Source: Okamejei kenojei (taxonomy: Eukaryota). From it: DNA of 64,000 nucleotides. The notes below the pieces were generated by a model. The model was not told the origin of the DNA. It was given only the letters and a program-made list of their open reading frames with translations, and ran no database searches. Shown in pieces: positions 16,766-56,214 of the stretch; within the stretch, counting starts at the first letter, position 1, and each line of letters opens with the position of its first letter. The position numbers and the translations under genes are program-made. The stretch spans positions 25,544,001 through 25,608,000 of the forward strand of contig CM069147.1 of assembly GCA_035221665.1 (NCBI GenBank), in the 5' to 3' direction.

Positions 16766-17654
16766 AACATTTAGAAATGTGGTTAGGTTTCGGGTTAGGT
16801 TAAAATTTCTCCCTTCTGTTCTACTTGAAAATCTATCGATTGCTTCATGGTTGTGGGCAAATAAGCAGGCGTTATCGTTTTGATGATAGTCCCATGTATG
16901 CCAAGGTAAACTAACTTTTACACAGACGACAATAATCATATGATACGGAATTAATCTAATCTTGAGATGATATCGGAAATAAGTTCTTGTATTATCTGTT
17001 TAGTTTAACTTCGCATCATGTTCGGAGCAGATATCCTTGGCCAAAAGGCCCGTTCCTCTGATATACTGTCCTGTGTACTTCTCAAAGGCCTTGCTAAAGT
17101 CCATTTAGACGACGTCTATGGCCCTGGCACCAGCAATCTTCTTTGTTGCTTCTTCATAATACTCCGGCAAATTCGTCTCCCGTGCACAAAGCCATGCTTA
17201 CTATATCCACTGAACGGATACAATTCCAAATACAGGTGTATCTCATCCCTCCACTTCACTCTGATTCATTTGTTCACTGTTCTCCATTCTGATTCGATGA
17301 ATCAAACGCGAATCCACATTGGTATTTTCCCAAATATACCTGTGTGTGCTTACGTGTGTCCAGTCGTCTCTTTGTTAATTTGAGCAGTCTCGATCATAAC
17401 TTCTTTGTCTTGCTTTCATTAAGGGAACGGTTATGCCATGATATAAGAAAACATATCTGTCCAGAGTTCCTTAGTCCTTGCAATATGCGGATTTTCATGG
17501 ATTGTTGGGATTCAGACATTGATTGACAACTAGAACACAAGGATGTGACAATACTATAGTATAAACCCTCTAATTCAGGTCAGTACTTTCAACTAATTTT
17601 GGCATTTACTAATCCAGGTCATTACTTTCAACTGCGGCACCCGCCTTGCATATA

Positions 17655-19245
17655 CAGTGGCTTGCAAAAGTTTTCATACCCCTTGAACTTTTCCACATTT
17701 TGTCACGTTGCAACCACAAACCTAAATGTATTTTATTGGGATTTTATGTGATAGACCAACACAAAGTGGTGCATAATTGTGAAGTGGAAGGAAAATGATA
17801 CATGGTTCCAAATTTTATTACAGATGAAAAACTGAAAAGTGTGGTGTGCAAAAGTATTCTGCCCCCCTGAGTCAATACTTTGTAGAACCACCTTTCGCTG
17901 CAATTACAGGTGCAAGTCTTTTGGGGTACGTCTCTAACAGCTTTACACATCTAGAGACTGAAATGTTTGCCCATTCTTCTTTGCAAAGTAGCTCAAGCTC
18001 AGTCAGATTGGATGGAGAGCGTCTTGGCAAGACTTGAAAACAGCAATTTTCAAGTCTTGCCAATTGGATTTAGGTCTGGACTTTGACTGGGCCATTCTTA
18101 CACGTGAATATGCTTTGATCTAAACCATTCCATTGTCGCTCTGGATGTACGCTTAGGGTCGTTGCCCTGCTGGCAGGTGAACCTCTGCCCCAGGCTCAAG
18201 TCTTTTGCAGACTCTAACAGGTTTTGTTCCAAGATTGCCCTGTATTTGGCCCCATCCATCTTCCCATCAACTCTGACCAGCTTCCCTGTCCCTGCTGAAG
18301 AAAAGCATCCCCAAAGCATGATGCTGCCACCACCATGTTTCACAGTGGGGATGGTGTATTCAGGGTGATGTGCAGTGTTAGTTTTCTGCCAAACATAGCG
18401 TTTTGCATTTAGGCCAAAAAACTTCAATTTTGGTCTCATCAGACCAGAGCACCTTTCTCCACATGTATGCTGTGTTCCCCACATGGCTTGTGGCAAACTC
18501 CAAACGGGACTTCTTATGGCTTTGTTTCAACAATTGCTTTCTTCTTGCCACTCTTCCATAAAGGCCCGATTTGTGGAGTGCGCGACCAATAGTTGTCCTG
18601 TGGACAGATTCTCCCACCTGAGCTGTGGATCTCTGCAGCTCCTCCAGAGTTACCTTGGCTGCTTCTCTGATAAATGCTCTCCTTGCCCGGCCTGTCAGTT
18701 TAGGCGGATGGCCATGTCTTGGTAGGTTTACTCTTTCCATTTTCGGATGATGGATTGAACAGTGCTCCGTGATATGTTCAAGGCTTGGGATATTTTTTTA
18801 TAACCTAACCCTGCTTTAAACTTCTCCACAACTTTATCCCTGACCTGTCTGGTGTGTTCCTTGGGCTTCGTGATGCTGTTTGTTCACTAATGTTCTCTAA
18901 CAAACCTCTGAGGCCTTCACAGAACAGCTGTATTCATACTGAGATTAGATTACACACAAGTGGACTCTATTTACTAATTAGGTGACTTCTGAAGGCATTT
19001 GGTTGCACTGGATTTTATTTAGGGGTATCAGCGTATCCCTGAATACTTTTGCACGCCACACTTTTCAGTTTTTAATTTGTAAAAAAAGTTGAAAACCATG
19101 TATCATTTTCCTTCCACTTCACAATTATGCACCACTTTGTGTTGGTCTATCACATAAAATCGCAATAAAATATATTTAGGTTTGTGGTTGCAACGTGACA
19201 AAATGTGGAAAAGTTCAAGGGGTATGAAAAATTTGCAAGCCACTG
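17655..19245 (-). mobile_element. Tc1/mariner DNA transposon with both long TIRs; transposase frameshifted
   Basis: TA|CAGTGGCTTGCAAAAG...TTTGCAAGCCACTG|TA with about 200-bp inverted repeats. Minus-strand fragments [30 protein letters not shown] and WPSQSPDLNPI. Confidence 0.96.
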
Positions 19246-20561
19246 TATATTCCAAATAGTCACAACCATGCAGTTTATTCCGCTGTTTTCCAAATCCTCC
19301 CGTAATTGGAGCAATTGGATTGCTTATGTGAACTGATATACTGATAGTAATTAATCGCTGAACTCCTTTATTAGCAATCAAACAACTTTGCGCAAACTAT
19401 AGAAGCAGGTGTCCGTACCACCCCTGTGAATTCTTCATCGACGTTTACATAGTTTAACCTGTATACATGAATTCCAGCGAGCAATTTCATCGGTTCACCT
19501 AAATATATGTTTTAGGGCGGAGAACGCTATTTGTGCTTTGAAAACCTGCAATAGTCGGTCCAAAGCCCACCATCTGGGCAACAAATCACATGCTATCTGT
19601 TTCACCGTGCCCACCCACCGCCATTCACGTCGGTTATGGAGTTATACAAAACCGTTTGACCAAACCGATGTAACACTGAAAGCTTTTCAGTGGTGGCGAA
19701 AGCAGAAACGCCGACAACAGTCGGCAGAACAAATGCCTCAGGAGCAGCGGTGAAGCAATTTATGCTTGTTTCCTGTTAAACTCGAAGCAATTACACCAGC
19801 AATCTCTGTTGAATAACGAATACCTCCCTCTGTTAAGAACTTTAAGAATGTGTTATCTATTTCTTTGCTAAACTATAGACCAATGGATCTCCCCCTTCTC
19901 ATCTGAAATGATTTCGCAGATATTTCTGCTGAAATGACGCAACTTCCGCACAAGTGTATCGATGTTTTTGCAGAAGCTAACTGAGCAAAATTAGGAATTT
20001 TCTCTTCATCCTGTGCGAAAACTCAAACTGAATTCAGTACGGAGAACAGGGGAATTTCAAAAATCTGGATTAGTGTTTAAATGTCCTCATCATAGCTTGT
20101 GTTAGCTGAAGGACTCGCCGATTACTGGGGTGGAAGCCATAAGGTATGAAATGGGCGGTGCAGTGAGGGGATGGGAAGGGAGCGGGGGGTCATGGTCGGG
20201 GATGGTAGGGATTCGGAATGATGACGTTGAATGGCGGAAAAGGACAGCGAGGGTTGGGGTTTGTAAAATGAGTGGTTTGATTGGGGAGGCGGGGAGTCAA
20301 TTTAGCCCAACTAGATGCAAAACGCAGGGTTTTAGAGCTCATCTACGTTTATTTTGTTTGGTGTATTGCTTTCTCTTCATTCAGTGAAATAGTCCACAGC
20401 CGATGGTGCCGCTGTTGACAGCAATGCAAGTAAATGTAAGTCTCGCCACATCGACAAGAGCCGCGCTGCAGTCACAGAAGAAGGGACGTGCTTCATCGTC
20501 TGACAATTCAACCTTCAGAAACGTCTACTGCTCCGCACGCCCTGTGATCACTTGCTGCAGA

Positions 20562-20617
20562 ATGTTGTCCAGCATTTGCACTTCGCTGTTTCTCGTTTTG
20601 GGGGATAATTTTCACAG
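20562..20617 (+). CDS. Exon 1 (signal peptide) of the VJ-C1 IgSF receptor; +1 frameshift in the G5 run at 20600-20604
   Basis: ATG at 20562 and donor ACAG|gtacat. Removing one G gives MLSSICTSLFLVLGIIFT-G and the phase-1 junction the V exon needs, across a 161-nt intron. Confidence 0.7.
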
Positions 20618-20778
20618 GTACATGGTATCCCCATAAACCTTTTATACAGACTAAAACCTACATCTATTGAAGAGTTCTTTAATGCGTGTCTCTATTTCCA
20701 TTTGCAATTAGCCCTGCTCCTGCGTTTAACCTTCTGGGGTGAAATATTCCTAATCGGGCCTGTTTTTCTTTCCTTTAG

Positions 20779-21099
20779 GGTATGGGAAAACTGCAGACAA
20801 AGTAACTCAATTTCCTCAAGCAGTGAATGTCTCGACGGGCCAAAATGCTTTGTTTCACTGCTCTGTTCCCTTCTTTCGTGAAGGGCCCAGCGTAAGCGTA
20901 CATTGGTGGAAACAGGGTGAGAATGTTTTTTTCATCCCAGACCCTGACGAGAGAACGGTTTCCGGCGTCAGTACTAAATTCAGTGGCTTCCTGAAAATAG
21001 TCAATGTGAGCCGACAGGATGCCGGAGTGTATTATTGTACCATCACCCGCCGGGGCACTTTAGTTGGCAACGGAACCGGGTCGACTTTAGTTGTGTTGG
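20779..21099 (+). CDS. Exon 2: germline-joined VJ-type Ig V domain of a SIRP/NKp30-like receptor
   Basis: Acceptor ttttctttcctttag| and donor G|gtaagt, phase 1/1, 321 nt. Translation [53 protein letters not shown] shows the B-strand C, C-strand W, DxGxYYC and a J-like GxG strand. Confidence 0.95.
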
Positions 21100-21761
21100 G
21101 TAAGTATGTTCAAACGAATGCGATTTCGCGACTGTGATATTGCCCTGCAAGTAACGTGTTTTTTTCAGATTTGAATCATTCATACGACCAGATGAATACT
21201 ATAAATATTGCCAATATACTGTAAATCATACCATAGATGGTCTGCATGTTAATATGTATAAACAATACGTTTTAGCGATATTAATCAAAACGTATCTTAT
21301 GTATTGGAAGTTTATTTCCAAAGCACAGCATAACATTAGTACAATACAGATAGCATTGTAGTGCCCGTTGTGAATACGGAAAAGACATGTGCAATTGGCG
21401 TAGTGGGTGACCCTATATGATTCACCATTTCACCTGCGTTAGATCAAGAGGACTGTTTGTTTTTATATTGGACGTTAGAGTCATTCAATTGTAACCGTGG
21501 CCTCCACATGAATAAGTTTGGACGCTCATGTTGCGAACGAAAAATAGCGAAGAATCGGAACCCAAATTTCCGTCAACATTTCAAATGACCTTCATGGTAT
21601 TCCGGACCTTCCAGCCATAATTCTCATATCACGACCAAATTATATTTTTCAGAATTTTTTATTCACAATGTTTGCAAATGATCGAGGAAATAGTAGCAGC
21701 AGAACATTTACATGTTTGGCATCTACCCGAGACGGCAGTATTACAAGAATGCACCGTCATG

Positions 21762-22580
21762 TTGTAGGAACTACAGATGCTGGTTTAAACCGAAGATAGA
21801 CACAAAATGCCAGCGTCACTCAGCGGGACAGGCAGCATCTCTGGATAGAAGGAATGGGTGACGATTCGGGTCGAGACCGTTCTTCAGACTGTCAGGGGAG
21901 ACGGAGATACAGAGATAAGGATATGTATGGTGTGAAAATGAGACAAAGGGGATGGCGATCAGGAGAAATGTAGAATAGATCATTGTTAGCTAGGAAAAGG
22001 GAACAATAAAGTAAACAGATGAAATGTAATCGAAGACAGTCAGACTAATCGTAGAATTGGGAAAGGGAGGGCGGGGGGGTGGAGAGAATGCGAAGGCAAG
22101 GGTTACTTGAAATTAGAGGCCATTAGTCATACCGCTGGGGTGTAAGCTGCACAAGCGAAATACGAGGTATTGTTCCTCCAATTTGCACTTGGCCTCACTT
22201 TGACAATGGAGGAGGCCCAGGACAAAAAGATCAGTGTGGGAATAGGAGGGGGAGTTAAAGTGTTGGCTAGCGGTGGGATCCCGTTGGAGGTGGCGAAAAT
22301 GCCGGAGAATTATGTACTGTATGCGACGGATGATGGTGTGAACGGTGAGGACTAGGGGGACTATGTCCCTGTTTCGACTGGGGGAGGGGGAGCAAGAGCG
22401 GAGCTGCGGGATATCGAGGAGACCCCAGTGAGGGCATCGTTAATGATGGAAGGGGGTAACTCCTGTTTCCTATTGAATGAAGACATCTCAGATGCCCTGG
22501 TATGGAGCACCTCATCTTGGGCGCAGACGCGGCGTAGACGGAGGAATTGGGAGTAGGAGAAGAGTCTCACAGGACGCAGG
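21762..22580 (-). mobile_element. Penelope-like element remnant in the V-C1 intron
   Basis: ORF 22361-22570 (-) reads YSQFLRLRRVC, the PLE RT C-terminal motif. Degenerate hammerhead motif at about 21857-21890. Confidence 0.8.
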
Positions 22581-22902
22581 ATATATATTTACCATCATGT
22601 TTTTCTTCACCAGACAGCACGAGTAAACGTTATCTCTGATTTAAATTCGGGTATAAAGGTTCCGTTTTCATTATTATAAAAGCATAATAAACGCGCGAAT
22701 CAGCCTCACATTAACCACTCACACTCCACACTCACTAAACATTGACACATACCGGTCACAATGATCTCATGCATCATTCTCGCAAACAACCTGTGCATAG
22801 ACTTAAATTAAAAATTATTGATTTTCAAGCATTTGCCAAGGTATCGTGTCCTTTGGATCATTTTCTACTAATATAAACGTATCACTATACTTTATTCCCT
22901 AG

Positions 22903-23208
22903 TTCCGCCAACTCCATTGAAAATTTACTCTGGAATTCCCGAGAAGGAGGAATTTTTCGTTATTCTCTGCGTGACATCTCCCTTTTACCCAAAGAATATC
23001 AGCTTCATCTGGTATCAAGATGGTAGAAAAACTACAACGGATTTAGTTAATAGCAACAAGCCCACCACAGATGGATTGTATGAAGCTTCCAGCCGATTAA
23101 AAGTGACACAGTATGTCCCGAGCGGCACCGTTTACACCTGCCTTGTGAATCATGTAACCCACCGTGTTCCTGCAATAGCCACTTACGTTGTCATCAACTC
23201 CGACACAG
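22903..23208 (+). CDS. Exon 3: Ig C1-set domain
   Basis: Acceptor tttattccctag| and donor ACAG|gtaaga, phase 1/1, 306 nt. [47 protein letters not shown] carries the C1 signatures FYP and YxCxVxH. Confidence 0.95.
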
Positions 23209-24439
23209 GTAAGACAGGTAAGACTATAGAAAGATACGTGGTTGGAGATTTCACAAAATGTCGCATGATAGGAATTACCGTTAGTCCTGGCCTGAAACTA
23301 TAAAATTTGAATATCCGTATATTATAATTGCATCCGCTCGATTTCCATGTTGTTGCAAATGTTCTCATCAAGTACACGCAAAATTGTCTTTTGACAAATT
23401 AATTGGGAGTTGCTACCTCCAGCATGTCAGGCGCTGCACCCCGAATCTCAAGAAAGCTATTCCCACAAATCTCCTCGATACGGTATAACCGCGGTGTTTC
23501 CATTTTCTTCAGCGGAAATAGATTGCCCCAGTAAAGCATCTCCCGTGACCAATTGCCCTTCATTTCTGCCGAAACGAGAAGACCCCAAACTTCTCCGAAC
23601 TCTTCATTGAACCGGTCACAATGATCTCATCTATCATTCTCGCAAACAACCCTAAATTAAAAATTATTGATTTCCAAGCATTTGCCACGGTATCGTGTCC
23701 TTTGGATCCACTGCTTCATCCATGAAGTTCCACGATCTGCCTTAAATCTTTTATCAGCTTAACAGAATTGTGTAATATGTTTCCTCTTTGCCCTATGCTT
23801 CCAAATTCCTCAAAATATAAGCATATCTTGGCTGATTTGTCCAGTCTAACAACGACCTCCTCACGTCTCCTATTTTTTTATGTAGGGTAAGAGCACTCCC
23901 ATAACAAACACAGAAACAATTCCCCGCCACCGCGAGGGTCAATTGTTTGATTCTAAACAAAATGCCGTGATCCCGATATCCGATTAACATATCTCGCCCT
24001 GCCGCTCTGTCTCTACCGCCGAATAAGTCAACGCAGAGGTGTAAGATAGATACATGAGCTAATATCCGCTCCTTGCCGAAAGGCCAGGGAGCTCAAACGG
24101 TGTCCCTCATTCCCTGAACATGACATAACTTCCTACAGATCAGAAATGTTGCCAATAACTTAACCTTGAAATAAAGTAACACGCTGAAAATATTCTCATT
24201 GACATTCCTGAATTTTAAAGCGAAGTTGTGAGTCGGACAGACGGTTTGCTGTCTCCGATTTAATCAGAAGTATTTCTTATATTGAACTTTCATTTTAATA
24301 AGGAATAAGCGAACACCGACCGGATCGTTTTTTAAAGCTGTTATTCTCGTAGTAAAGTATGAAAACCATTATTTCTCGCATATAAGAATAGGTTCCTAAA
24401 ATGACGCCTGAAAGCATGTTTTATTTTTTGATATATAAT

Positions 24440-26415
24440 ATAGAACAGTACACCACAGGTTCAAACATTTTGTCCCGCACGTGATGCAAGTTAAAATAAT
24501 TTCCTCTCCCTTTTTGTGATCAATTTCCTTACACACTCTGCATCTCAATGTACCTGTACGAAAGACTCTTAAAGCCCACGTTCACGTCTGCTTCCAACAC
24601 CACCATCACCTGGCAACGTTTTCCAGGCACTCACCATTTTCTGTATAAAAACAACTTGCCCCACACATCTCTAATCTTAAAGTTATGCCCTCGATTCTAT
24701 CACATGTTAACACTGGGAGAAGGGTTCTGACTATTTCTGACTATGTCCCTCATAACCCTTTGTACTTGTATCTCCCCACAACTTCCGATGCCCCAGAAAA
24801 AAATAATCCGAAGTTGGCCAAGCTCTCTTGATGGCCAATATCCTCTCATGCAGCCAGCATTCTGGTGAAGTCATAGAGCAATGGAACAGGCTGTACTGTC
24901 CAACATGCCCATGCCGACCTAGATGCCTGATCTACACAAGTTCCACCTGCCTGCATGCATCTCTCATCCTTCTAACCCTTTCCGAAATATGTAGCTGTCG
25001 AAATGTTTTTTAAATGATGTTTTAGTAAATCTGTTCTGCACCCTGTGAAATGTTTCCACATTCTTGCCACATTGGGTGACCAAAACGGCACACAACATTC
25101 CAAACGCGGCCTATTCAAAGTTTTATAAAGCGGTAACATGGCTCCCTCTCGGCACATGGCTCTAGCACTCAGTGCCACGACCGATGAAGGGAAGTATACC
25201 AAATGCATTCTTTACAATTCTATCAATTTGAGTTTGCATTATTGGGGAGCTATATCTTTAGACCCAAGTTCCAACAATACATCAGTGCTGTGGAAAGTAT
25301 TGCACAGCGTAACCGCGCACACTTGCTCCGATTAAACTGCATTTGCTATTTCTATGCACACATCTGCAATTATACCTTTCCCTGTTTAGACGGCGAGGGG
25401 CATAGTGTCAATGATGTTGACCAGCTGGAATTTGTCAAACATGTTCAGGGTAATATCCTTAGCCAATACGTGTCTGGCCCTACAAGGGGGAGGACAAAGC
25501 TTGACCTAATCATTGGAAATTGGGAAATTGGCAAGTGACTGAAGATGGTTATCAACAATTAAAACAGGATGTTGATCTGTTGGGCAGGTAGGCTGAGGAA
25601 TGGTTAATTGCGTTAAATACCAGTAAGTGAGAGGTGTTGCATTTTCTGAGGTCAAATAGTGTCAGGACCCAAACAGTGTAAGGCAGGGCTCTACGGAGTG
25701 ATGGGGAGCAGATGGATGTAGGAGTGCAGGTACTCACTTCCTTGAGAGTCTTGTCACAGGTAGATAGGGTGAGCAAGAAGGCGTTCGGCACAGTGGCCTT
25801 CATCATTCAGGATATTGAGTATAGAAGTTAGGAGGTCGTGTTACAATTGCACAGGACATTGGCGAGGCAACATTTGGAGTATTGTGTTCAGTTATGGCCA
25901 TCCTGTTACAGGAATGATGTTGTTAAGCTGTAAAGGGTGCAGAGAAGATTTACGAGGAAGTTACCAGGACTCGAGAGCCTGAGTTATAGGAAGAGATTGA
26001 GCAGGCTCAGACTTTATTCCTTGTGCTGCAGAAGGATGTGCGGTGATCTTATAGAAGTTCTCCGCATTAGGGGAACAGATAGGGTAAACGCACAGTATAT
26101 TTCTCAGAGAAGGGGAATCAAAAATTAGAGGGCAAAAATAAATCTGGACCGGTGCATGGAAAGGATGGTTTTAGAAGTTCATGGGCCAAACGGCAGGCAA
26201 GTGGAACTAGTGTAGATGTGAACTATGTCCAGACTGCTCTGGTTAATGAGCTAATATCTGGCTGGCTTATTAAAGTTTGAAATTGAATCTGCAGGTTCAC
26301 AACGGTTAATTGTAAAACAACTTTTATTATAAGCCACAATGTAGATGGGCTATATTGGTCCGCGTGGACAAGTTAGGCTGAAAGGCCTGTTTCCACATTG
26401 AATTACTCTTTGACC
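24440..26415. mobile_element. Old CR1 LINE fragments in both orientations (about 24440-25225 minus, about 25300-26415 plus)
   Basis: LYKTLNRPRLECCVPFWSP (minus) and QRRFTRKLPGL..GDLIEV (plus). Confidence 0.75.
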
Positions 26416-27107
26416 ACAAATGTTGGTGGGTGAACACAGGGATTGTCCACAAGGTTAAAGTCCGAAGCTGATGCAAGGCCAATTTTGAAGGTATTGGACA
26501 GGAATTTCAAACGTTTGGTGGAGGTTTGAAGCAGTAATAGATTGGTGGAGGCTTGGAGCAGTAATGGAGTAATAGGTAAGCAAATGGGAGTAAGGAAGCC
26601 CAGATGACATGCAAATTTGAGTCTCTGGTCAGGAAAAAAGGAGGTATGGGCCAGTTATAGGCAGCTGGGATGAAGTGTATCCTTGAAGGAAATTAGGGAA
26701 CTGAGGAGCATAATTAAGAGGCAGATCAAACGGACATAAAAAAGGCAATGGATAATGCTAGCAAATAATATTAAGGAAAATATGAAGACATTTCGTGAGT
26801 ACATTAAGGGAAAAATGGTAACTAGACAGTGATATAAAACCTGCTGTAACCTTTGACAACCTTCCTCCCAACTCCATCAATTTTATTAAATTTAATTAGA
26901 CCATTAGGCAAATCTATTTATTTTTCGCCAAACTCGTTTTCGGAAAAAACATAATCTGTCAATTGTATTTGTTTGCTTTTCGCAAATGTTCAAATTATTA
27001 AAAGATTTCTGAGCTTGCAGCGTATTACATCAGATTCAAGGGGGAGGGGTTTTCCAATTTCAGGAGCTACGATATTCATATGTATCTTATGCATTTGAAT
27101 CTTACAG

Positions 27108-27206
27108 GTACTACCATCATCAATTGTGTCAGGATAATGTGCGGTTTAGTAACGTTACTACTGCCTCTTCTCGTTGCAACATGTTGTATTGCAAGAAAAA
27201 ATAAAG
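27108..27206 (+). CDS. Exon 4: transmembrane segment with Arg in an N-x-x-R motif
   Basis: Acceptor cttacag| and donor AAAG|gtaaag, phase 1/1, 99 nt. Translation [33 protein letters not shown] is a hydrophobic stretch followed by a basic stop-transfer sequence. Confidence 0.85.
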
Positions 27207-29116
27207 GTAAAGAATAATTTAACCCAATTAAGCATTTTGTTCAGGGGGCTATAGCTCTAGAAAGGGAGGCGCGTGATCTCGCCTTTCTTGGGAAAAATAG
27301 CTTAATTTATCTTGTCATCTCGGTCGACAAAGCCATTGTGGGCCGAGGGGCATTTTCCTATGCTGTGTATTTATGTTTTATGTTACAATGAGTGGTCTCC
27401 CTATTTCTTCTGCGAAATTGCATTACCTTGCATGAAAGTATTCATATTCGCCATTCCGCCCATTTTTAAGCACACTAATATCCTACCGTAATGTGCTGTT
27501 CCCCTCAGTACTGAAGATCTCGCCCAATGATGTGTCACCCTTACTTCAGAAATCAGGTTTGATTCTGGTTCGAACAATCTACAGTACTGGAAGCAACGCA
27601 ACTGCGCTCATTGCTTTCTGTGAGCAGTTGCAGTTTAGTCTGCTTTCTTTTCCGCAGCCAGCCATGAATCGATCTGCAACCTGTCTCTAATTACGTATTC
27701 TCAGATCTTTTTTCATGTGTCCTATGTCGCCAGCCTATCTGACATTCCTTTGGAAATCTAGACAGTTTTTATTTGTATTTCATTATCATAGCCCTGCATC
27801 CATATTTGCTCGCTGCCACGTCAAATTAAATGAATCCCAGCAATCGGGAGAGATTGCTAACTGGAGATTCTATTTAATACCAGAGGCCTGGCTCCCGAAA
27901 AACACTGACTAGAATTAAAAGGCTAACGACATCAGCATGTTAATATCGATTCGGGATGAAGCCATGTATTTGCATATGATCGTCTCCATCGATCTATATT
28001 AAGCACCAACTCTATGAGAACCGCTTTTTTCGCGTGACAAAATGCCATTTTTGTAACTTGAGAAGACATTAGTATTATTAATTTACCAGGTGCCCAGAAG
28101 GAAGGAGAAATATCTGATATTAATGGGATGTACTCAAATTCCATGGAATTATTTCGGAAATATAATATAATATATTATACAAAATAAGGCACCTATTATA
28201 AGGAAATATAATATAATATATTATACAAAAGTAGCAGTCGAGCCGATTGGACGAAAATGAAGCATGGACCTAAAAATTACTGTCGGTAGTCTGCGATGCA
28301 TTTAATTGCCCTCAGAGTAATCTGAAGTAACATTTCACATTTACACGCCCATGAAAGAAGTAAAGTTAAAATATCTGTGTTTGCCTTCAATACAATGGAA
28401 ATTAGTTAGCAGTATCGTTGCTACCAATACCTCCCGGTAGCAGCCATTGAAAGGGTTTTGTACGTTAACACGATTGCAAGATGAAAACCCATCTTGCCAA
28501 GATGATATATTGCACTCACTTCTAAAAATTCCTGCATCTTGTCAACAAAATGTCTAAGGTCTATTAAATGCTCGTACCTCCAGAGCAAAATCATGAATGC
28601 CTTCCACGGATGCATGTGTGCCGTTTTTGCCTGGCACGCACTGCATGCCCAGTAATTACCATGTGAAGCCTCGAAGACAGTAGTAGTATATCCAATCAGT
28701 ACAGAATCAAGCTGCCCTCTATTTGCGCATAGAACGAAACCCCAATGCACTCGCAATCATCTCAGTGGACCTTCTCTGAACTATGTCGTGTAACTTTCTT
28801 GCGGAGAACGACACCATCGGGCTCTAAAATGGATCCAAACGAAAGTGTTACTTTCTTTAAGTAAGCGCATCGAAACAGACGACGTTTTTGCTGCTTTGCA
28901 CAGACTGACAACCACTTGGAAACTGAATTTTGATGTGAAATAAAATAAAAAATCGCGTACACGATTATTTCCGTTCAATCAGTTGGCTGTAATTTGCTTC
29001 TTTGCGTTTGTAAATGCTAAGATAAAGCAAAGACGTTTACGAAGATAATAAAGGCCAATTACGGCTAGGAAGCCTTCCCCCGCCATACCCACACTGCGAT
29101 TTATTTAGCTAATCTA

Positions 29117-30731
29117 CAGTGCCCTCCATAGTTTTGGACAAAGACCCATCACTCATATATTTGCCGCTGTACTCCACAATTTGAGATTTTTATTAGAAAA
29201 AAAATCACATGTGGTTAAAGTGCACATTGTCAGATTTTAATAAAGGGCCTTTTTATACATTTTGTAGGAATTACAGCAGTATTTATACATAGTTCCCTCC
29301 CCCCATTTCAGGGCACCATAATATTTGGGACACAGCAATGTTATGTAAATTAAAGTAGTCATGTTCAGTTTAGTATTTTGTTGCATATCCTTTGCATGCA
29401 ATGACTGCTTGAAGTCTGCGATTCATGGACATCACCAGTTGCTGGGTATTTTCTCTGGGATGCCCTGCCAGGCCTGTATTACAGTTATCTCTAGCTTATG
29501 CTTGTTTTGGGGGCTAGTACCCATCAGTTTTCTCTTCAGCATATAAAAAGCATGCTCAATTTGGTTCAGACCGGGTGATTGACTTGGCCACTCAAGAATT
29601 GACCATTTTTTTAGCTTTGAAAAACTTTTGCGGTAAGTTTGGGATCATTGACTTGCTGTAGCATGAGCTGCCGGCCAATGAGTTTTGATGCATTTGTTTG
29701 AAATAGAGCAGATAGGATGTGTCTTTACACTTGAGAATTCATTATGCTCCTACCATCAGCAATTGTATCATCAATGAAGGTAAGTGAGCCATTACCTTCA
29801 GCAGCCATACATGCCCAGGCCATAACACCCCCACCACCGTGTTTCACCGATGAGGTGGTATGCATTGGATCTTGAGCAGTTCCTTCTCTCCTCCATACTT
29901 TGCTCTTACCATCACTCTGATATCTTAATCTTCATCTCATTTGTCCACAAAACCTTTTTCCAGAACCGCGGGTGCTCTTGTAAGTACTTCTTGGCAAACG
30001 ATATCCGGGCCATCCTAATTTTGCGGCTAACCAGTAGTTTGCACCTTGCAGTGTAGCCTCTGTATTTCTGTTCATGAAGTCTTCCACGGAGAGTGGCCAT
30101 TGACAAATCCACACCTGACTCCTGAAGAGTGTTTCTGATCTGTCGGACAGTTGGTTGGGGATTTTCCTTTATTATAGAGAAAATTCTTCTCTCATCAGCT
30201 GTGGAGGTCTTCCATGGCCTGTCAGTCCCTTTGCGATTATTAAGCTCGAAAGTGCACTCTTGCTTCTTAATGATGTTCTGAACAGTTGATTTTGGTAAGC
30301 CTACGGTTTGGCTGATGTCTCTAACATTTTTATTCGTGTTTCTCAGACTCATAATGGCTTCTTTGACTTTCATTGGCACACCTTCGGTCCTTATGCTGCT
30401 TAACAGCAATAAAAGTTTTCAAAAGTGATGGAAAGACTGGAGGAAATACTAGGTGCTGAGTACCCCCTTAAACACCCCTGAGCAATTGCAAATGCCTGTG
30501 ATGCCATGTGTCCCAAACCTTATGGTGCCATGAAATGGGGGGACTGTGTATAAACCCGGCTGTGATTTCTACATGGTGAAACCAAAATGTTTAAAATGGC
30601 CTTTAATAAAACCTGACAATAAGCAATTTAACTACATGTGATTTTTTTTTCTATTACAAATCTCAAATAGTACAGTACAGAGGCAAATAAATAAATGATG
30701 GGTCTTTGCCCAAACATTATGGGGGTCACTA
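29117..30731 (-). mobile_element. Tc1/mariner transposon of a second, older family, intronic
   Basis: TA|CAGTGCCCTCCATA..GGACAAAGACCCATCA at the left end, with a degenerate inverted copy at the right. ORF 29912-30409 (-) has an HTH region and KKVLWTNEMK. Confidence 0.9.
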
Positions 30732-30934
30732 TTACTCGCTTTTTTTTAGTACTGTTGGAGCAGCAGAAGTGATCGACACTTCTATTCCTGTAATGGCGTT
30801 CCTGTTCCTGTCGAATCCATTTTAGAGTCTGATAATGTCGTTCTCTGCAAGAATCAATTCACCTTTGTTTAGAAGATGCATACTTTTCTCGTTTAGTCCA
30901 TGGAATGTGCAGGTGAAGCGATTGTGCCTTATTT

Positions 30935-31260
30935 TTAGTTTAGATTAGTTTCGTTTAGTTTAGTTTAGTTTAGATCCGTTTCGTTTAGTTTAATTTAATT
31001 TAGATAGAGTTTAGTTTAATTTAGTTTAGTTTTAGTTTAGATTAGTTTAGAGATACAACGCAGAAAAGGGCCCTTCCGCCCAGCGAGTCCATGCCGACCA
31101 GCGATGCCCGCATACTTACCATATCCTACACAAACTAGGAACAGTTTTACAATTATACCAAGCCAATTAACCTACAAACCTGTACGTCTTTGGACTGTAG
31201 GACCCGGTCTATGGCGCTGTGTGGCAACAACTCTAACGTTGCGCCAACGTGCCGCCCCAA
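30935..31260 (-). mobile_element. tRNA-derived SINE with (TTTAG)n tail expansion
   Basis: (TTTAG)n at 30935-31050 adjoins agagatacaacgcagaaaagggccc..aattaacctacaaacctgtacgtctttgga; same family as 41325-41640. Confidence 0.7.
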
Positions 31261-31613
31261 ATCTGATCTAAATCTGAGCAAATTCAGGATAAATCCAATG
31301 GCGGTGATCGACAAAAGGACAGGTACACATATATGTACGCATCAGGCTAAATATCAGTACCTCCGCCCTTCGGCATGGTTCGGCGTTCAATAAGGTGATG
31401 ATTGACTTAGCTCTGCGTTTACCACTGCCAACCGAACGATTGACGGCTTTACTTAAACATATTACATCTCCTGACAGAAAATGTAAAGTGGAGAAAAAAA
31501 GTCAAATTCTTGTCCTTGCGCATAATGTATCAAAAATATTTATATGGCAAAGTTAGACACAAGATGCTGGAGAAACGAAGCGGGTCAGGCAGCATCTCTG
31601 GAGAAAATGGATA

Positions 31614-31647
31614 AGTGACGTTTCGGGTCCGGACCCTTCTTCAGACT
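31614..31647 (-). ncRNA. Minimal type I hammerhead ribozyme motif in a Penelope-derived repeat
   Basis: Minus strand reads AGU-CUGAAGA-A-GGGUC-CG-GACCC-GAAA-CGUC-ACU: intact CUGANGA, GAAA and GUC core, stem I AGU/ACU, stem II, and a palindromic ACGU in place of stem III. Confidence 0.65.
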
Positions 31648-31966
31648 GAATGCAGCAGGGAGAGTAGAGGGAAAATTTGAAAGCGAAGTAAATTAGGAAA
31701 ATTCGGGGCCAGCAATAGATGACCTCAGGTAAAGTGGTTTCCCGATGGGCTGACTGTTGGCCAGGGACGTGTGTGAGTCCATGAGGGATGCATAGTTGCG
31801 AACTGCCATATCGGTAACCAACCTTTAGTGGAGGACGGGGGGGGGGGGGGGGGGGGGGGGGGGTTTAGCGAGGTGTTGCCGGCCTTGATTGGTCCTGTTT
31901 TTTTCTGCGCCTGCAGTTCCGCCTCCCCTCACCCACCACACACACACACACGCACGCACACGCACG

Positions 31967-32013
<47 letters not shown>

Positions 32014-32015
<2 letters not shown>

Positions 32016-32402
32016 CATCATAATCATCATCGGCGGTCAATCGAAACGAGTATGACTGTCCTCTTTTGGGAGGACGCCTGTGCGTGACTTTGTTCAACGT
32101 GGGGAGACTGGTGCACAGACAGCCACCACACGGTTCTTGACAGATCTGGGTCAGGATCCACTGGCACGGAGTCCAAGTCCACCGGGGACCCTTTACTGCT
32201 GCAGCCTTCATCCGTCTTCCCAGCCGTTCTGACGCTCCAATAAAGTCAGCCATCATCCTCTGCCTGTTCCACCGTTGAGGTCTTGGTTGGATTGCTGTTT
32301 GTCAGGGACCTTCCCATCGACCTTCAGGCATGGGTGGCTCTACCAAGAGCATAGCTCCAGACGGCATCGCTCTTAGTATCTCAAGGCCACGACAGGGTGA
32401 CA
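32014..32402 (-). mobile_element. Short non-autonomous RTE-clade-derived element within a (CA)n microsatellite
   Basis: The minus-strand 5' part (gagcgatgccgtctggagctatgctcttggtagagccacccatg) resembles, from memory, RTE/Rex3 5' UTRs. 3' tail is (GAT)n. (CA)n tracts flank both sides (about 31937-32013 and 32434-32506). Confidence 0.5.
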
Positions 32403-32455
32403 ATCCACATACACACATTCTCAGCCAAACACTCACACACACACACACACACGCA

Positions 32456-32508
<53 letters not shown>

Positions 32509-32761
32509 GCAGACTTAAGAAGTGTCCCGCCCCAAGAGATACCTGCCCATTTTCGTCAGATATGCTGCCTGACCCGCTGACTCACTCCAGCACTTTGTGT
32601 CTATCTTTGGTATAAACCAGTATCTGCCGTTCATTTTTATTACTTTTAGCTGGCAGCCTGTTGTAATAATTTCTGATGTTGCGATGCTCTCGTGTCTGCA
32701 TGAGATTTAAAACAACTTAATAAATGAACTCATGTTCTTCCCCCTAATTTTCATCTCGTAG

Positions 32762-32817
32762 ACCAAGCAGAAACCAGGGACGTTACGGCAGGAAACAAGA
32801 AAAGAGAGCAAACAATT
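32762..32817 (+). CDS. Exon 5: short cytoplasmic exon; read-through to TAA at 32851-32853 would give an alternative terminal exon
   Basis: Branch point, pyrimidine tract and acceptor ctaattttcatctcgtag|, phase 1. Translation DQAETRDVTAGNKKREQTI. Phase-0 donor ATT|gtacgg is only moderately strong. Confidence 0.6.
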
Positions 32818-33699
32818 GTACGGATAATGCCACTGACAACTAACAGCCAATAAAGCAAATGCGAGGTGCAGATGTAATCTATTCAGAATGGAATCCCAAG
32901 TAGTGTCCGTGCTCAAAGTGATATCTTGTTATTTGTGTAATTACTTATCAGCTCGTCCATTCTCTGACAACAAGCTGCAACAACCCTCAGAGAAAGGGTG
33001 AAATTACTATATTACAAGCATGAAACTGATTTTACAAAACTCCTATCCAACTGAGCCCTTCACCTTCAACACTTGGGGTGAAATGGGTTGCAAATGATTG
33101 CCCAAGTTATGTTCAAGTAAGTTTCGGTGTCCATGCGTTTAGCAGCTGTGCTCCATGTCTTTGCATATGTTTTGTAAAGGTAGGCACCTAAATTATAATT
33201 TCTGTAAAATAATATGCACTTCCAAGCGTGCGTTTACCGCATTCTTTCCTGTCGCTTTGCAATCGCTGAATGTTTGAAGTGTACGGAAAATTAAAAACAA
33301 ACATGATCAGAAATTGAAACACTGTACATCATATGAATAAAAATCGAAACTAATCCGTCTTGACTCGGTTGGGGAAAAGTAAACATATAGTGGGAAGCCT
33401 TTTGTTGCATGCTATCAGTCAAAGAAAAGACTATACATGAGTACTATCTAGCCGTCCACGGTGTACCATTAAAGGATAATAGCCTTCAAATATAATTAAA
33501 TGGGAAGTGCTGGAGCTTTGGGATTGCGAAATCTATAATATTGTAAGGGTCGGTGTGCACGTAATAAATGCTCCGTATGGCTGGATCCGTAAAATCAGTA
33601 ATACAGTCAGCATATCATTTTCATGGCCTTATTTCAGAACAGCAGGAGAGTAGAGAAGCACAGGTGTTCATGCAAGTACAGCAGCAGAGAATAGGAAGT

Positions 33700-36152
33700 G
33701 GAGGGGTAAAGGGTGCTGAGGAAGAGGATTTTTTGGAATGTATGCGGGATAGTTATCTAAATCAACATGTAGAGGTACCAACGCGAGAGCAGGCTATTTT
33801 AGACAGGGTTTTGAGTGACGAGGAAGGGGTAGTTAGCAGTCTTGTTGTACGTGCCACCTTGGGCAAGAGTGACCATAATATGGTTGAGTTCTTCATTAGG
33901 ATGGAGAGTGACATTGTTAATTCAGAAACAATGGTTCTGAACTTAAAGAAAGGCAACTTCGAGGGTATGAGACGTGAATTGGCCAAGATTGACTGGCAAT
34001 TAATTCTAAAAGGGTTGACGGTGGATATACAATGGAAGACATTTAAAGACTGCAGGGATGAACTGCAAAAAATGTTCATCCCAGTTTGGCAAAAGAATAA
34101 ATCGGGGAAGGTAGTGCAATCGTGGATAACAAGGGAAATCAGGGATAGTATCAAAACAAAGGATGATGCGTACAAAGTAGCCAGAAAAAGCAGCATACCA
34201 GAGGACTGGGAGAAATTCAGAGACCAGCAGAGGAGGACAAAGGGCTTAATTAGGAAAGGAAAAATTGATTATGAAAGAAAACTGGCAGGTAACATAAAAA
34301 ACTGACTGCAAAAGCTTTTATACATATGTGCAGAGAAAGAGATTAGTTAAAACAAACGTAGGTCCCTTGCAGTCAGAAACAGGTGACTTGATCATGGGGA
34401 ACAAGGATATGGCGGACCAATTGAATAACTACTTTGGTTCCATCTTCACTAAGGAAGACATAAATAATCTGCCGGAAATAGCAGGGGACCGCGGGTCAAA
34501 GGAGAAATTGAGTGAAATCCAGGGTAGTCGGGTGGTGTTGGGTAAATTGAATAGATTAAAGGCCGATAAATTCCCAGGGCCAGATAGGCTGCACCCCAGA
34601 GTACTTAAGGAAGTAGCTCAGGAAATAGTGGATGCATTAGTGATAATCTTTCAAAACTCTTTAGATTCTGGAGTAGTTCCTGAGGATTGGCGGGTAGCAA
34701 ACGTAACCCCTCTTTTTAAGAAGGGGTGGAGTGAGAAAACGGGGAATTACGGACCGCTTAGTCTAACATCGGTAGTGGGGAAACTGCTAGAGTCAGTTAT
34801 TAAAGATGGGATAGCAGCACATTTGGAAAGTGGTGAAATCATTGGACAAAGGTAGCATGGATTTACGAAAAGTAAATCATGTCTGACGAATCTTGTGGAA
34901 TTTTCGAGAATGCAACTAGTAGCATGGATAAGGGAGAACCAGTGGATGTGGTATATCTGGACTTCCAGAAGGCTTTCGACAAGGTCCCACATAAGAGATT
35001 GGTATACAAACTTAAAGCATATGGCATTAGGGGTTCAGTATTGATGTGGATAGAGAACTGGCTGGCAAACAGGAAGCAAAGAGTAGGAGTAAACGGGTCC
35101 TTTTCACAATGGCAGGCAGTGACTAGTGGGGTACCGCAGGGCTCAATGCTGGGACCCCAGCTATTTACAATATATATTAATGATCTGGATGAGGAAATTG
35201 AAGGAAATATCTCCAAGTTTGCGGATGACACTAAGCTGAGGGGCAGTGTTAGCTGTGAGGAGGATGCTAGGAGGCTGCAAGGTGACTTGGATAGGCTGGG
35301 TGAGTGGGCAAATGTTTGGCAGATGCAGTATAATGTGGATAAATGTGAGGTTATCCACTTTGGTGGCAAAAACAGGAAAGCAGACTATTATCTAAATGGT
35401 GGCCGATTAGGAAAAGGGGAGATGCAGCGAGACCTGGGTGTCATGGTACACCAGTCATTAAAAGTAGGCATGCAGGTGCAGCAGGCAGTGAAAAAAGCGA
35501 ATGGTATGTTAGCTTTCATAGCAAAAGGATTCGAGTATAGGAGCAGGGAGGTTCTACTTCAGTTGTACAGGGTCTTGGTGAGACCACACCTGGAGTATTG
35601 CGTCCAGTTTTGGTCTCCAAATCTGAGGAAGGACATTATTGCCATAGAGGGAGTTCAGAGAAGGTTCACCAGACTGATTCTGGGATGTGACTGTCTTATG
35701 AAGAAAGACTGGATAGACTCGGTTTATACTCTCTAGAATTTAGGAGATTGAGAGGGGATCTTATAGAAACTTACAAAATTCTTAAGGGGTTGGACAGGCT
35801 AGATGCAGGAAGATTGTTCCCGATGTTGGGGAAGTCCAGGACAAGGGGTCACAGCTTAAGGATAAGGGGGAAATCCTTTAAGACCTAGATGAGAAATACT
35901 TTTTTCACACAGAGAGTGGTGAGTCTCTGGAACTCTCTGCCACAGAGGTTAGTTGAGACCAGTTCATTGGCTATATTTAAGAGGGAGTTAGGTGTGGCCC
36001 TTGTGGCTAAGGGGATCAGAGGGTATGGGGAGAAGGCAGGTACGGGATACTGAGTTGGATGATCAGCCATGATCATATTGAATGGCGGTGCAGGCTCGAA
36101 GGGTCGATTGGCCTACTCCTGCACCTAATTTCTATGTTTCTATGTTTCTATG
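33700..36152 (+). mobile_element. CR1 LINE (second subfamily), 5'-truncated, with frameshifts
   Basis: ORFs 33568-34305, 34328-34855 and 34879-35736 contain SDHN, DFQKAFDKVPH, GVPQGS and FADD. Tail is (TTTCTATG)n. Confidence 0.95.
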
Positions 36153-36254
36153 GACTAAAGCAGAGACTGGCGGTATGGTGTGTAGCCAATCGAAAGACAA
36201 ATCAATTGATAATAATATGATCAAACTCTATTCGTTAAAGATATAGAAGAAACA

Positions 36255-38460
36255 ATGAACTGCAGATGCTGGTTTAACAAGGAAGACAAAATGCTGGAGC
36301 AAATCAGTGGACCAGACAGCATTCGTGGAAAACTTGCGATCGGTGACGTTTCAGGTCAAGACCCTTCTTCAAATTAATGACGTTTCGGGTCGGGACCCTT
36401 TCACCTGGAATATCTCTGACACCTCTCTTCCCTTTTTTGATCTCTCTGCCTCTTGTCACAGGAGACAAACTATGAACTGACGTTTACTCCACGGCTACAG
36501 ACTCCCACAGTTATCTGGACTACACTTCCTTCCACCATGGCTCATACAAAGACGCTATCCCCTATTCTCAATTCCACCGACTGCACCACATTGGCTCTTT
36601 TTCAATCGAGGACATTCAAGTCGTCCTCTTGCTGTAGTAATGTTAGTTCTCCCCTTCTGTCATAAATGGACCCCTGACTCGCGTCCCCTCTGTGCCCCGT
36701 AGCTCTGCCCTCGCGCCCCTTCCCCCCCAAACAGAACAAGGATATAGTCCCTTTGTCCTCATCTTTCACTACACTAGCCACTGAATCCAATACTTCAGTC
36801 TTTGGTATTTCTGTCACCTCCAATGTGATCCCACCACTAATCATACCCTCCGCATCCACCATATCATAATCCTGCATTTCCAGCATCTCTGATGTGATCA
36901 CAAAAGCAATCATATCTTACCATCTCCACCCACTCTGCGTTTGCAGAGATCACTCCTTCTACAATTCCATGGTTCATCCCTTCCCACCAAAACCACCTCC
37001 CCCCCGAATACTTCCCCTGTCCTCTAATGCATGGTGCATTGAGTTTAATATAGAGAAGTGTGAGCTATTGCTTTTTGGGAAGTAAAACCATCTACACAGT
37101 GAATGGCAGAGCTCTGGGGAGTGACGGGGCGGACGGATCTGGGAATACAGGTACATAGTTCCATGGAAGTCACAAGTAGATAGGGTAGCCAAGAACGCTT
37201 TCAGCACATCGGCCTTCATCAGTCAGAGTATTTAATATAGAGTTCGGGAGGTCATGTTACAGTTATGCATGCCATTGATGTGGCAACACTCATGGTATTG
37301 TGTTCTGTTTTGGTCACTTGGTTGCAGGAAATATGCTATTAGGATGGAAAGGTTACAGAGAAGTAAGACGAGAATGTTGCCAGAACACGTCCGGGCTATA
37401 GAGAGAAATTGTGCAGGCTAGGACTTTATTCCTTGGTGCAGAAGGATGAGGGGTGATCTTATAGAGGTGTACAAGATCATGAGAGGAATATGGTACTTTT
37501 ACCCAGAGATAGGGAATCGACAAGCAGAGGAGATCGGTTTAAAGTGAGTGTGGGAATTTTTAATCAGAACCTGCGGAGAAACCTTTTTACACTAAGGGTG
37601 GGCGGTGTGCGGAACGAATAGCCAGAGGAGGTAGTTGAAGCAGGTACTGTAACAAAGTTTACAAAACCTTTAGAAAGGTACATGGACAGGATAGGTTTAG
37701 ATGGTTAAGGGCCAAACACAAGCCGAGTGTGGATGCAGCACGTTGGTCGGCGCAGGCAAGTTGTTAGAAAGGGCCAGGCGATGTGACTATGACTCTCTAT
37801 AAGTCTAACCACAGGAAATGCAACACCTGTCTTTATACCTTCACCCTCGCCTCCATTCAGGGACCCCGGCACTCCTTCCAGGTGAGACAGAAGTTCACGT
37901 GCACCTCCACCAAACTTATGTACTCTATCCGCTCTTCCCTATATGGCCTCATGTACACCCACTGGACTGAATGTCGTCTCTTTAACCATTTCGCTCCTAA
38001 CACTAGGGTTTGATCACCAAGGCCAGCGGGAACTCATTTCTAACTATTTTAGCCCCACTTTTCATTCCCATACTTACCCTTCTGGCCTGGGCCTCCTCCA
38101 TTCCCAGAGTGAGTCCACACGCAAACTGGAGGACAGCACCTCATATTCTGCTTGGGTGGGTCCAATTTCAGCTAACCTCTAACGAACCCATCATATTTTC
38201 GCCCATAAACCCTCACCTCTTTCTCACCCCCCCGCACACCCTTGAGCCCTGGCTGACCATGTATCTACCCTTTCCTTCCCTTCCCTATTTATCCACGGTC
38301 TTACACAATTTTCTACTTGTCAATCCTCCAACTTTACAATTCGCAAATCTTGAATTATTTTGTCCCACAACTTGGTGTGTGTACCGTATGTGTAAATATA
38401 TTTATACCCATTGTCAAATAATCTGCTTATCACCACCCCTCCCGCCTCTGATCACCTAAG
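36255..38460 (+). mobile_element. Penelope-like remnants with a nested CR1 3' fragment (about 37020-37800)
   Basis: Same PLE family sequence as 4206-4952 (gacactcc..ttccaggtgagacagaagttcacgtgcacctcc). The CR1 piece reads EFNIEKCELLLFGK. Confidence 0.75.
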
Positions 38461-38482
38461 ACCTGTCATACTTTCTCCTGCG

Positions 38483-38514
<32 letters not shown>

Positions 38515-38819
38515 ACTCAAGCGGCAGGTAAGCATAATTCCTAGACGAGCTCAATTACGCACACTTTGCTAGGGAAAACACTGATGTGGCTTCCGAGCCC
38601 CCATAGCCCCGATGGTATCACAATCTCAGTCATAGAAGCCGACGGCAGATTATTCTTCAGGAGGGTGAACTCTGGAAAAGCGTCTGGACCTGATGGCCTG
38701 GTCATGTTCTTACAACCTGTGCAGACCATTCGTCTCAGAGCGATTCCCAAATGTGTAATTATATTTGTTTCCCGATTGTTTGACTCCATGTTAAATATTA
38801 ACTTTATGTCTTAAGTGAT

Positions 38820-38930
38820 AAGGGTGGCATGGTGGCGTGGGGGTCGTGTTGCTGCTTCACATCGCCAGAGACCAGAGTTCAATCCTGACTATGGCCACTG
38901 TATATACGTAGATTGCACTACCTCCCTGTG
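38820..38930 (+). mobile_element. tRNA-derived SINE head
   Basis: ggtggcatggtggcg (A box-like) and gagttcaatcct (B box-like). Confidence 0.55.
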
Positions 38931-39525
38931 AGAGTTATGAGCAAACATGTGAATGAGAGGGATTTCGTAACTTTGTTTAGTGGATTAGCACATGCAAAAT
39001 CTAGGTGTTATGCTTGACATATCTCTCTTTTTAAGAGAAAAGGTACAGGCTTGTCCAAGATAGGAGAATTTTATCTGCAAAACAGATGAAGAACGGATGC
39101 TTCACTACTCGTGCACACAGCGTTTTTTTTTCTGACAACCATCACTGTGATGTGGTTACTGTTGCATTAAAACAGTATCAATGCGTGCAAAGAAGCAGTT
39201 ATTCGCCTATCCTTAATATCACGCATTTGGTGAATTACAACGTAATGGAAACGCTATCTGTGGTTGCTAAATGTAGTGGTCACAACAGAAATTCTATAGT
39301 ACATTTTATGGGTTAATAGCATTGGCGCAATGGAAATGTGTTCGTTCAGCCCACAGTGAAAATTGTCATTGCAATGGACGTAATGATGTCTGTTTAATGG
39401 ATACGTTAGGTTTGTTCAAGGGAGTATGAACGCTGACGTGGCTTCTGTGGTTATTTGAATGACATATAACTCAGTATTGCATGTCTTAAAACATTCCGAA
39501 TATGCGGTTGTTTTTTTCTTAACAG

Positions 39526-39732
39526 GTGGAAAACCATAAACCCGGGAAAGGGAAAGTGTTATACAAGGGACTGAAGACGCTGGTCCTGATTTCAAAAATT
39601 GTCCATAGTTTTTCTTCCACTTGTACTATCTGCAACGCTGTGGTTTTAAGAACACTTCCTCCTTGCAGCAAAATTGATGTCTGTTTTAGTTTTCCATATA
39701 TTGAACAAAATGTGTGTGCCCATCCAAGATAA
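39526..39732 (+). CDS. Exon 6 (terminal): cytoplasmic tail with ITIM VLYKGL
   Basis: Strong acceptor tttttttcttaacag|. The phase-0 frame VENHKPGKGKVLYKGLK.. is open to TAA at 39732, whereas the phase-1 frame stops after 3 codons. AATAAA at 39806-39811. Confidence 0.6.
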   Translation: MENHKPGKGKVLYKGLKTLVLISKIVHSFSSTCTICNAVVLRTLPPCSKIDVCFSFPYIEQNVCAHPR

Positions 39733-56180: not shown

Positions 56181-56214
56181 TTCTGACCTTTGTTCCCAAT
56201 TTTTTAATCTTTTT

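Follow-up and report, generated by a model that had tools for sequence, protein, structure and literature searches.

Genes that never rearrange, and in which a V domain and its J-like strand lie in one exon (VJ) followed by a C1-set domain, are the favoured models for the target of the RAG transposon. SIRP, UrIg/UrIg2 and PRARP are already published as VJ-C1 genes, and the examples published from cartilaginous fish (UrIg, UrIg2 and NCR3) are few and are either secreted, multi-domain or without C1. Here we analyze a 64,000-nucleotide stretch from the skate Okamejei kenojei (assembly GCA_035221665.1, contig CM069147.1, positions 25,544,001 to 25,608,000), referred to as the window and numbered from its first letter. 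It probably contains a five-exon gene on the + strand (20562-32853, approximately 12.3 kb) for a type I immunoglobulin superfamily membrane receptor with a short-tailed, activating-type layout. An earlier annotation made from the sequence alone (the original prediction) had described a VJ-C1-TM layout of this kind, which has precedents in the published genes. The locus is a predicted non-rearranging immune-receptor gene of an under-described chondrichthyan family.

SIRP (SIRPα/β/γ, CD172; PDB 2wng, 4i2x) and the family of the skate gene have in common a single-exon V domain with a germline J-like strand, true C1-set domain(s) and a transmembrane (TM) segment. Both contain paired members, where long tails with YxxL/I motifs (VPYAAL, TVYAQ, LTYAAL and TEYAQL in the family) contrast with short tails accompanied by a basic TM residue, and the family motifs appear to resemble those of the SIRPα tail. 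The SIRP ectodomain is V-C1-C1, whereas the skate gene and its family carry one C1 domain and therefore lack the three-domain arrangement. The SIRP family was dated to tetrapods by a 2026 survey (PMC13262535).

UrIg/UrIg2 (PDB 9dmx) and the skate gene are alike in being non-rearranging genes of cartilaginous fish whose leader is split, whose VJ lies in one exon and whose constant domains are of the C1 type. UrIg is secreted with three C domains, and UrIg2 has nine to eleven, plus hinge exons in batoids (PMC12227049). The skate gene differs from both in having a single C1 exon where these have a VJ followed by at least three C1-type domains, in its TM arginine and short tail, in its paralogues with tails carrying immunoreceptor tyrosine-based inhibition motifs (ITIMs), and in being one of many members of a large multigene family, not a single-copy gene. 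NKp30/NCR3 shares with the skate gene a non-rearranging VJ, a TM arginine and a short tail, but its VJ leads directly to the stalk and TM segment without a C1 domain, while the skate gene has a C1 exon. KIR, LILR/PIR, teleost NITR and the Xenopus CEACAM pairs resemble the family in placing near-identical ectodomains on ITIM-bearing inhibitory chains and on activating chains with a charged TM segment. They also resemble it in recurrent inhibitory-activating conversion with leftover ITIM sequence in the activating copies, as appears to be the case here. These families use V/I or C2-type domains, not VJ and C1, and no sequence relationship to them was seen.

Exon structure and domain identity

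The gene opens at 20562-20617 with a leader exon encoding the first part of a split signal peptide, from the ATG at 20562 to the donor CAG/gtacat (a slash marks the exon boundary here and below). An intron of 161 nt separates it from the VJ exon at 20779-21099, where the motifs FHC, HWWKQGE and DAGVYYC are followed by a J-like G strand at the end of the exon and the donor TGG/gtaagt. The C1-set exon is located at 22903-23208 and contains FYP, WYQDG, GLYEASS and YTCLVNH. The TM exon at 27108-27206, flanked by the acceptor cttacag/ and the donor AAG/gtaaag, was the one good candidate when the sequence was scanned for exons that begin and end in phase 1 and encode a hydrophobic core. The VJ, C1 and TM exons all begin and end in phase 1, and the leader-V-C1-TM junctions have canonical splice sites in phases 1/1/1, with the leader donor in phase 2 as assembled (see below). 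The terminal coding exon (32762-32853) has its acceptor ctcgtag/ at 32761/32762 and ends in the stop codon TAA at 32851-32853. All five exons are on the + strand.

No heptamer-spacer-nonamer resembling a recombination signal sequence (RSS) was found within 19500-27500, in agreement with the original prediction, which had claimed that none is present. Likewise, no second C1 match was obtained within 21100-27107, leaving a single C1 exon between the V and TM exons. Because the exon and splice structure holds and RSSs are absent from 19500-27500, we regard the first four exons as real and the gene as non-rearranging.

All searches and folds were made with single exons or with natural database proteins. 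In Pfam the V exon matched V-set (1.5e-10) and Ig_3 (3.6e-11), and the C1 exon matched C1-set PF07654 with 2.3e-12 and 47.5 bits against a cut-off of 21. AlphaFold models were obtained with a predicted local distance difference test score (pLDDT) of 86.9 for the V exon, which shows a split G strand, and 85.1 for the C1 exon. The top Foldseek matches of the C1 model were all MHC class II membrane-proximal and Ig CL domains (query-based TM-score, TMq, 0.75-0.83), and with a Pfam score above cut-off and a C1-type fold of the model the exon belongs to the C1 set. Its best sequence match in PDB is UrIg2. The structure search with the V model was undiscriminating, as IgNAR V, NCAM, basigin, antibody and T cell receptor (TCR) V, CD79b, NKp30 and CD8 all appeared with Z-scores of 12-14. 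The leader, the single-exon VJ with its J-like strand, the true C1 domain and the TM segment, all present in the original prediction, are borne out by the splice sites, by Pfam and by a hidden Markov model (HMM) of the family described below.

The receptor family and its closest relatives

The family HMM matched the window exons with E-values of 3e-48 (V), 3.4e-48 (C1) and 1.4e-05 (TM), far beyond chance. In an exhaustive HMMER search for which the V exon was the sole query, two near-identical proteins emerged, with 89% identity to P0001 from Leucoraja erinacea (319 aa), which NCBI names ‘tyrosine-protein phosphatase non-receptor type substrate 1-like’, a name equivalent to SIRPα-like, and 88% to P0002 from Amblyraja radiata. 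The C1 exon is 86-88% identical to P0001 in one comparison and 88-89% identical to the two skate proteins in another, and the TM exon is 83% identical to P0001 (tblastn). P0002 has a near-identical ectodomain but a long ITIM tail. Trees were built separately for V and C1, with the C1 domains extracted by HMM columns, and on both the window exons form a three-row clade with P0001 and P0002 with a support of 99 in the Shimodaira-Hasegawa-like approximate likelihood ratio test (SH-aLRT). On the C1 tree this clade falls inside a batoid clade (SH-aLRT 96), within a subfamily common to several shark orders. With its V, C1 and TM exons matching the profile and grouping with named members, the gene belongs to a chondrichthyan VJ-C1-TM family.

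The 30 family matches whose source was looked up all came from sharks, rays, skates or the chimaera Callorhinchus, as did every named family match of the word-index searches. The two matches from other sources, a multi-Ig protein of Vipera with a long branch and a weakly matching Ig heavy chain of Carassius, were not accepted as family members. Within the searches made, this is a multigene family with a predicted membership restricted to chondrichthyans, and dozens of its members have already been annotated automatically by NCBI in shark, ray and chimaera genomes. The automatic names vary from SIRPα-like, the commonest, over SIRPβ-1-like, tapasin-related-like, Ig lambda-1 light chain-like and NCR3LG1-like to CD276 and PD-L1-like. 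This inconsistency suggests that a curated family name does not exist. We agree with the original prediction that the receptor family is chondrichthyan and poorly characterised.

In the long-tailed members the tail contains three to five tyrosine motifs of the ITIM type or of the immunoreceptor tyrosine-based switch motif (ITSM) type in the conserved order (V/A)xYAAL, TVYAQ, LTYAAL, TEYAQL, while short-tailed members, P0001 among them, have Arg or Lys in the membrane span. A survey of tails and TM segments gave 33 members with a long, ITIM-bearing tail, compared to 16 in which a short tail goes with a basic TM residue. The two classes are interspersed on both the V and the C1 tree. On the V tree we counted 14 changes between activating and inhibitory type among 49 labelled rows, compared to a mean of 13.7 with shuffled labels, which speaks for interspersion only and gives no direction of change. 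The interspersion fits repeated conversion or homogenisation of the ectodomains, and equally well noise from automatic gene models.

The two skate models each show peculiarities of their own. The translation of window sequence 10250-10480 (+), which consists of GC-rich simple repeats, is approximately 53% identical over two pieces to the 68-residue N-terminal extension of P0001, and this model probably borrows an upstream non-leader exon in place of a signal peptide. P0002 carries two near-identical C1 domains and looks like a chimeric or read-through gene model; the translation of 27535-27672 (+), which is unique in the window, is 49% identical to its last 55 residues.

When the family profile was compared with PDB, the best contiguous V-C1 alignments were to SIRPα (2wng, 63.8 bits), a λ light chain (55.3 bits), UrIg2 (52.0 bits) and SIRPγ (51.7 bits), while in total score UrIg2 came first with 119.6 bits, the sum of matches to three C domains. 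The alignment to d1-d2 of SIRPα covers the V and C1 domains, and the family has in this respect the V-J-C1 arrangement of SIRP. In the ESM Atlas the clusters nearest to a full-length family member were SIRPα (0.97). The closest known proteins thus appear to be SIRPα/γ and UrIg2, and the profile search and the ESM Atlas agree in placing SIRP among the closest known relatives, in line with the original prediction, which named SIRP among its comparisons. The similarity to SIRP is at a level that is also seen with Ig light chains and UrIg2. As judged from sequence, the family is SIRP-like in architecture and logic.

The alternative that survives best is that the gene belongs to a shark NCR3 (NKp30) family, reportedly described by Kinlein et al. 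2021 from nurse shark (MT914154-MT914161), in which case that name already covers the family. Some family members without a C1 domain, such as P0019 from Callorhinchus, would fit this, and so would the arginine in the TM segment of NKp30, which in mammals couples to adaptors with immunoreceptor tyrosine-based activation motifs (ITAMs). The J-like strand GNGTGSxLxV presumably resembles the NKp30 G strand, and the V model aligns to NKp30 (6yjp) with a Z-score of 12.3 and 25% identity, although tied with dozens of unrelated V/I-set domains. However, no match named NCR3 or NKp30, or originating from nurse shark, was obtained in any search, including those with orectolobiform queries. PMC10751288 and PMC12227049 also treat NCR3 as VJ-only and UrIg as the novel VJ-C1 gene, which counts against the identification. 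We therefore consider membership in the NCR3 family unlikely and retain the five-exon VJ-C1-TM receptor as our reading.

Membrane span, tail and relics of ITIM exons

In the TM exon an arginine is encoded at the outer edge of the membrane span. This exon joins the one at 32762 in phase 1, and the reading frame continues into the tail D-QAETRDVTAGNKKREQTIVRIMPLTTNSQ, which has 30 residues and no tyrosine, and the TAA stop codon overlaps an AATAAA sequence at 32849-32854. Leucoraja P0001 ends in the same exon with a short tail (...CIARKNK-DQAETDAC). The exon 32762-32853 is the predicted natural end of the gene, and the combination of a basic residue in the membrane span with a short tail devoid of tyrosine is that of an activating-type receptor.

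The original prediction had instead described an inhibitory receptor, VJ-C1-TM-ITIM, with six exons spread over approximately 19 kb (20562-39732) and a product of approximately 347 aa, in which a 20-nt exon 5 (32762-32781) was spliced to an exon 6 at 39526-39732 (+) containing VLYKGL. This structure has in its favour that the exon phases add up, that the acceptor at 39525/39526 resembles a good one, that many paralogues bear ITIMs and that VLYKGL fits the ITIM consensus, for which we used the pattern [ILVS]xYxx[ILV] in a cytoplasmic exon belonging to the transcript. The required donor GAC/GTTACG at 32781/32782 is, however, poor, with few consensus positions matched, and lies 6.7 kb from its acceptor, whereas exon 5 read onward stays in frame to the stop codon overlapping AATAAA. 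Furthermore, the nearest homologue P0001 terminates in the equivalent of exon 5, and elsewhere in the family a TM segment with arginine accompanies short tails. The open reading frame (ORF) at 39526-39732 matched neither a profile of 20 family tails nor the whole-family HMM and was rejected as an exon. Because the donor is poor and this ORF is unlike the family tails, the ITIM appears to be an over-extension of the model, and we consider the six-exon structure very unlikely. Exon 5 does start at 32762, but exons 5 and 6 fail as modelled, and with them the 19-kb extent and the product of approximately 347 aa; the structure is replaced by the five exons in 20562-32853. An ITIM-bearing tail is not retained either, since the in-frame tail lacks tyrosine, the VLYKGL reading frame has no family homology and the genuine ITIM exons, described in the following, are broken.

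Two stretches downstream of the TM exon are decayed pieces of genuine family ITIM exons. The first, corresponding to the first family ITIM exon, is located at 30894-30935 (+), where the acceptor tttag/ is followed by SMECAGEAIVPYF and a stop, and where the exon is cut off by a (TTTAG)n-like satellite. Compared with Amblyraja P0002, 9 of 12 residues are common to SMERASEAMVPY(AALNL), and at the corresponding place P0002 reads SMERASEAMVPYAALNL. No other match in the six-frame translation had 9/12 or more, and 20 shuffles all stayed below this value. The TTTAG-like satellite occupies 30936-31060, directly after the truncated exon.

The second relic, of a family ITIM/ITSM exon, was detected by matches to the tail HMM and extends over 45766-47948 (+), with coding sequence at 45766-45848 and 47921-47948. 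It opens with ttcag/ and reads TMQFQCDPKFTYTTLNIAGLETSTKSR-Y-VEESTIYAQ/gtaagt, and when read across the insertion it makes a 37-codon phase-0/0 exon of the family type (...LTYAALNIAGS...STEYAQ/). The insertion is a Tc1/mariner element of 2.07 kb (45849-47918), which splits the relic at a TA, and the exon resumes after the duplicated TA. The element has terminal inverted repeats of 222 nt that are 94% complementary, and transposase remnants on the minus strand, which are themselves broken by a fragment resembling a long interspersed nuclear element (LINE) at approximately 46391-46687.

The family HMM detected no V, C1 or TM exon from a second gene in the interval 32.9-45.7 kb, and a regex search for the last tail exon of the family gave no match downstream of 47948. 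The simplest reading is that both relics are decayed ITIM exons of the inhibitory ancestor of the gene. Two wrecked ITIM exons downstream of the TM exon suggest that the copy descends from such an ancestor. Three further matches were not retained: a tail-like match at 23957-24031 was weak, out of order and at chance level, a minus-strand match at 31684-31767 was set aside, and a TM-like HMM match at 56084-56398 fell in AT-rich low-complexity sequence.

State of the copy and its significance

As assembled, the leader exon has 56 nt and ends in phase 2, while the V exon requires phase 1. The cause is the G5 run at 20600-20604, as a version with four Gs would read MLSSICTSLFLVLGIIFTG, in accordance with the leader consensus of the family (P0004 ...AVLAIIFTG, P0153 ...VLGIIFTA). 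The original prediction was right about the G-run and its frameshift, which are real in the assembly, and it assumed without demonstration that they were an assembly error when it corrected them. Because one extra G breaks the leader reading frame, the copy may be a dead gene or pseudogene.

Several observations weigh against the five-exon activating-type receptor. Translation as assembled stops at 20879-20881 in the V exon after approximately 52 residues, low-depth DNA contigs over 20400-20799 report no indel at the leader, and a canonical leader is missing from both skate homologue models, P0001 and P0002. The last two points lean towards a real defect, neither of them strongly, and we give roughly even odds to a recently disabled allele or pseudogene on the one side and a homopolymer error on the other. 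Furthermore, two sequencing runs with approximately 0.2 of the words, placed on 17400-23399, behave as DNA and contain no exon-to-exon joints. The arginine lies at the very edge of the hydrophobic stretch, and for this reason adaptor pairing can only be presumed. The activating and inhibitory labels within the family depend on automatic gene models, some of which are truncated or chimeric, and a neighbouring gene that has since disappeared could instead be the source of the relic at 45.7 kb.

Germline-joined Ig light chain (IgL) clusters exist in cartilaginous fish, which counts for a third alternative, where the locus is a germline-joined cluster of IgL or TCR type, or else part of the UrIg/UrIg2 lineage with its secreted or multi-C forms. 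Several homologues are indeed named ‘Ig lambda-1 light chain-like’ by NCBI and UrIg2 is the best total PDB match for both the C1 exon and the family profile, but this alternative is scarcely credible given that the C1 exon closes with a phase-1 donor, not a stop, and is followed by a conserved TM exon, that RSSs are absent from the region searched, that there is one C domain compared to three in UrIg or nine to eleven in UrIg2 (PMC12227049), that whole-protein E-values are approximately 1e-50 to 1e-170 within the family against approximately 1e-20 to 1e-33 for Ig chains and UrIg2, and that paralogues carry ITIM tails.

ORFs for LINE reverse transcriptase and endonuclease (Pfam RVT_1, Exo_endo_phos_2) are found at 12395-14248 (-), 33568-35736 (+), 53775-55118 (-) and 57974-59338 (+), the second of these just downstream of the terminal exon and in the same orientation, and the remainder of the window contains LINE and Tc1 ORFs only, with no flanking host genes. 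Very high-copy repeats lie at 17600-19400 and at 21600-22600, the latter in the V-to-C1 intron. The DNA runs mentioned above are deep only at these repeats, where word depths range from 1e5 to 3e6. The intron between the TM and tail exons contains (CA)n/(TG)n microsatellites and a poly-G/poly-C run at 31900-32500. A second C1-set exon is present at 5117-5420 (+), with good splice sites (tttgcag/ ... cag/gtaacg) and an internal frameshift near 5258-5268. This exon falls in another subfamily, with P0055 from Heterodontus (54% identity) as the nearest relative, and a V or TM exon to go with it was not detected in the window.

The basic TM residue of SIRPβ, NKp30 and activating KIR has as its partner an aspartate of DAP12, FcRγ or CD3ζ. 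By analogy with these receptors, the VJ domain of the skate protein would bind a ligand, the TM arginine would pair with an acidic TM residue of an ITAM adaptor of the DAP12, FcRγ or CD3ζ class, and the adaptor would carry the signal. We infer such an adaptor-coupled activating mechanism for the skate copy from this analogy. The copy would have arisen from an inhibitory ancestor by conversion to the activating type, with decay of the ITIM exons.

The locus alone adds less than the family, being one activating-type and possibly disabled copy, and its value lies in how such copies arise and decay. Tentatively, and well short of a conclusion we would favour, SIRP may have in this family its counterpart in cartilaginous fish, or a sister lineage, made up of membrane-anchored, non-rearranging VJ-C1 receptors with inhibitory and activating partners that existed at the base of the jawed vertebrates, with the skate locus recording an inhibitory-to-activating conversion in which one ITIM exon was truncated and the other disrupted by Tc1. 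If true, the origin of SIRP-like receptors could shift back by several hundred million years, before the tetrapod origin assigned to them, and a natural killer (NK) or myeloid-type receptor system would be added at the base of the jawed vertebrates.

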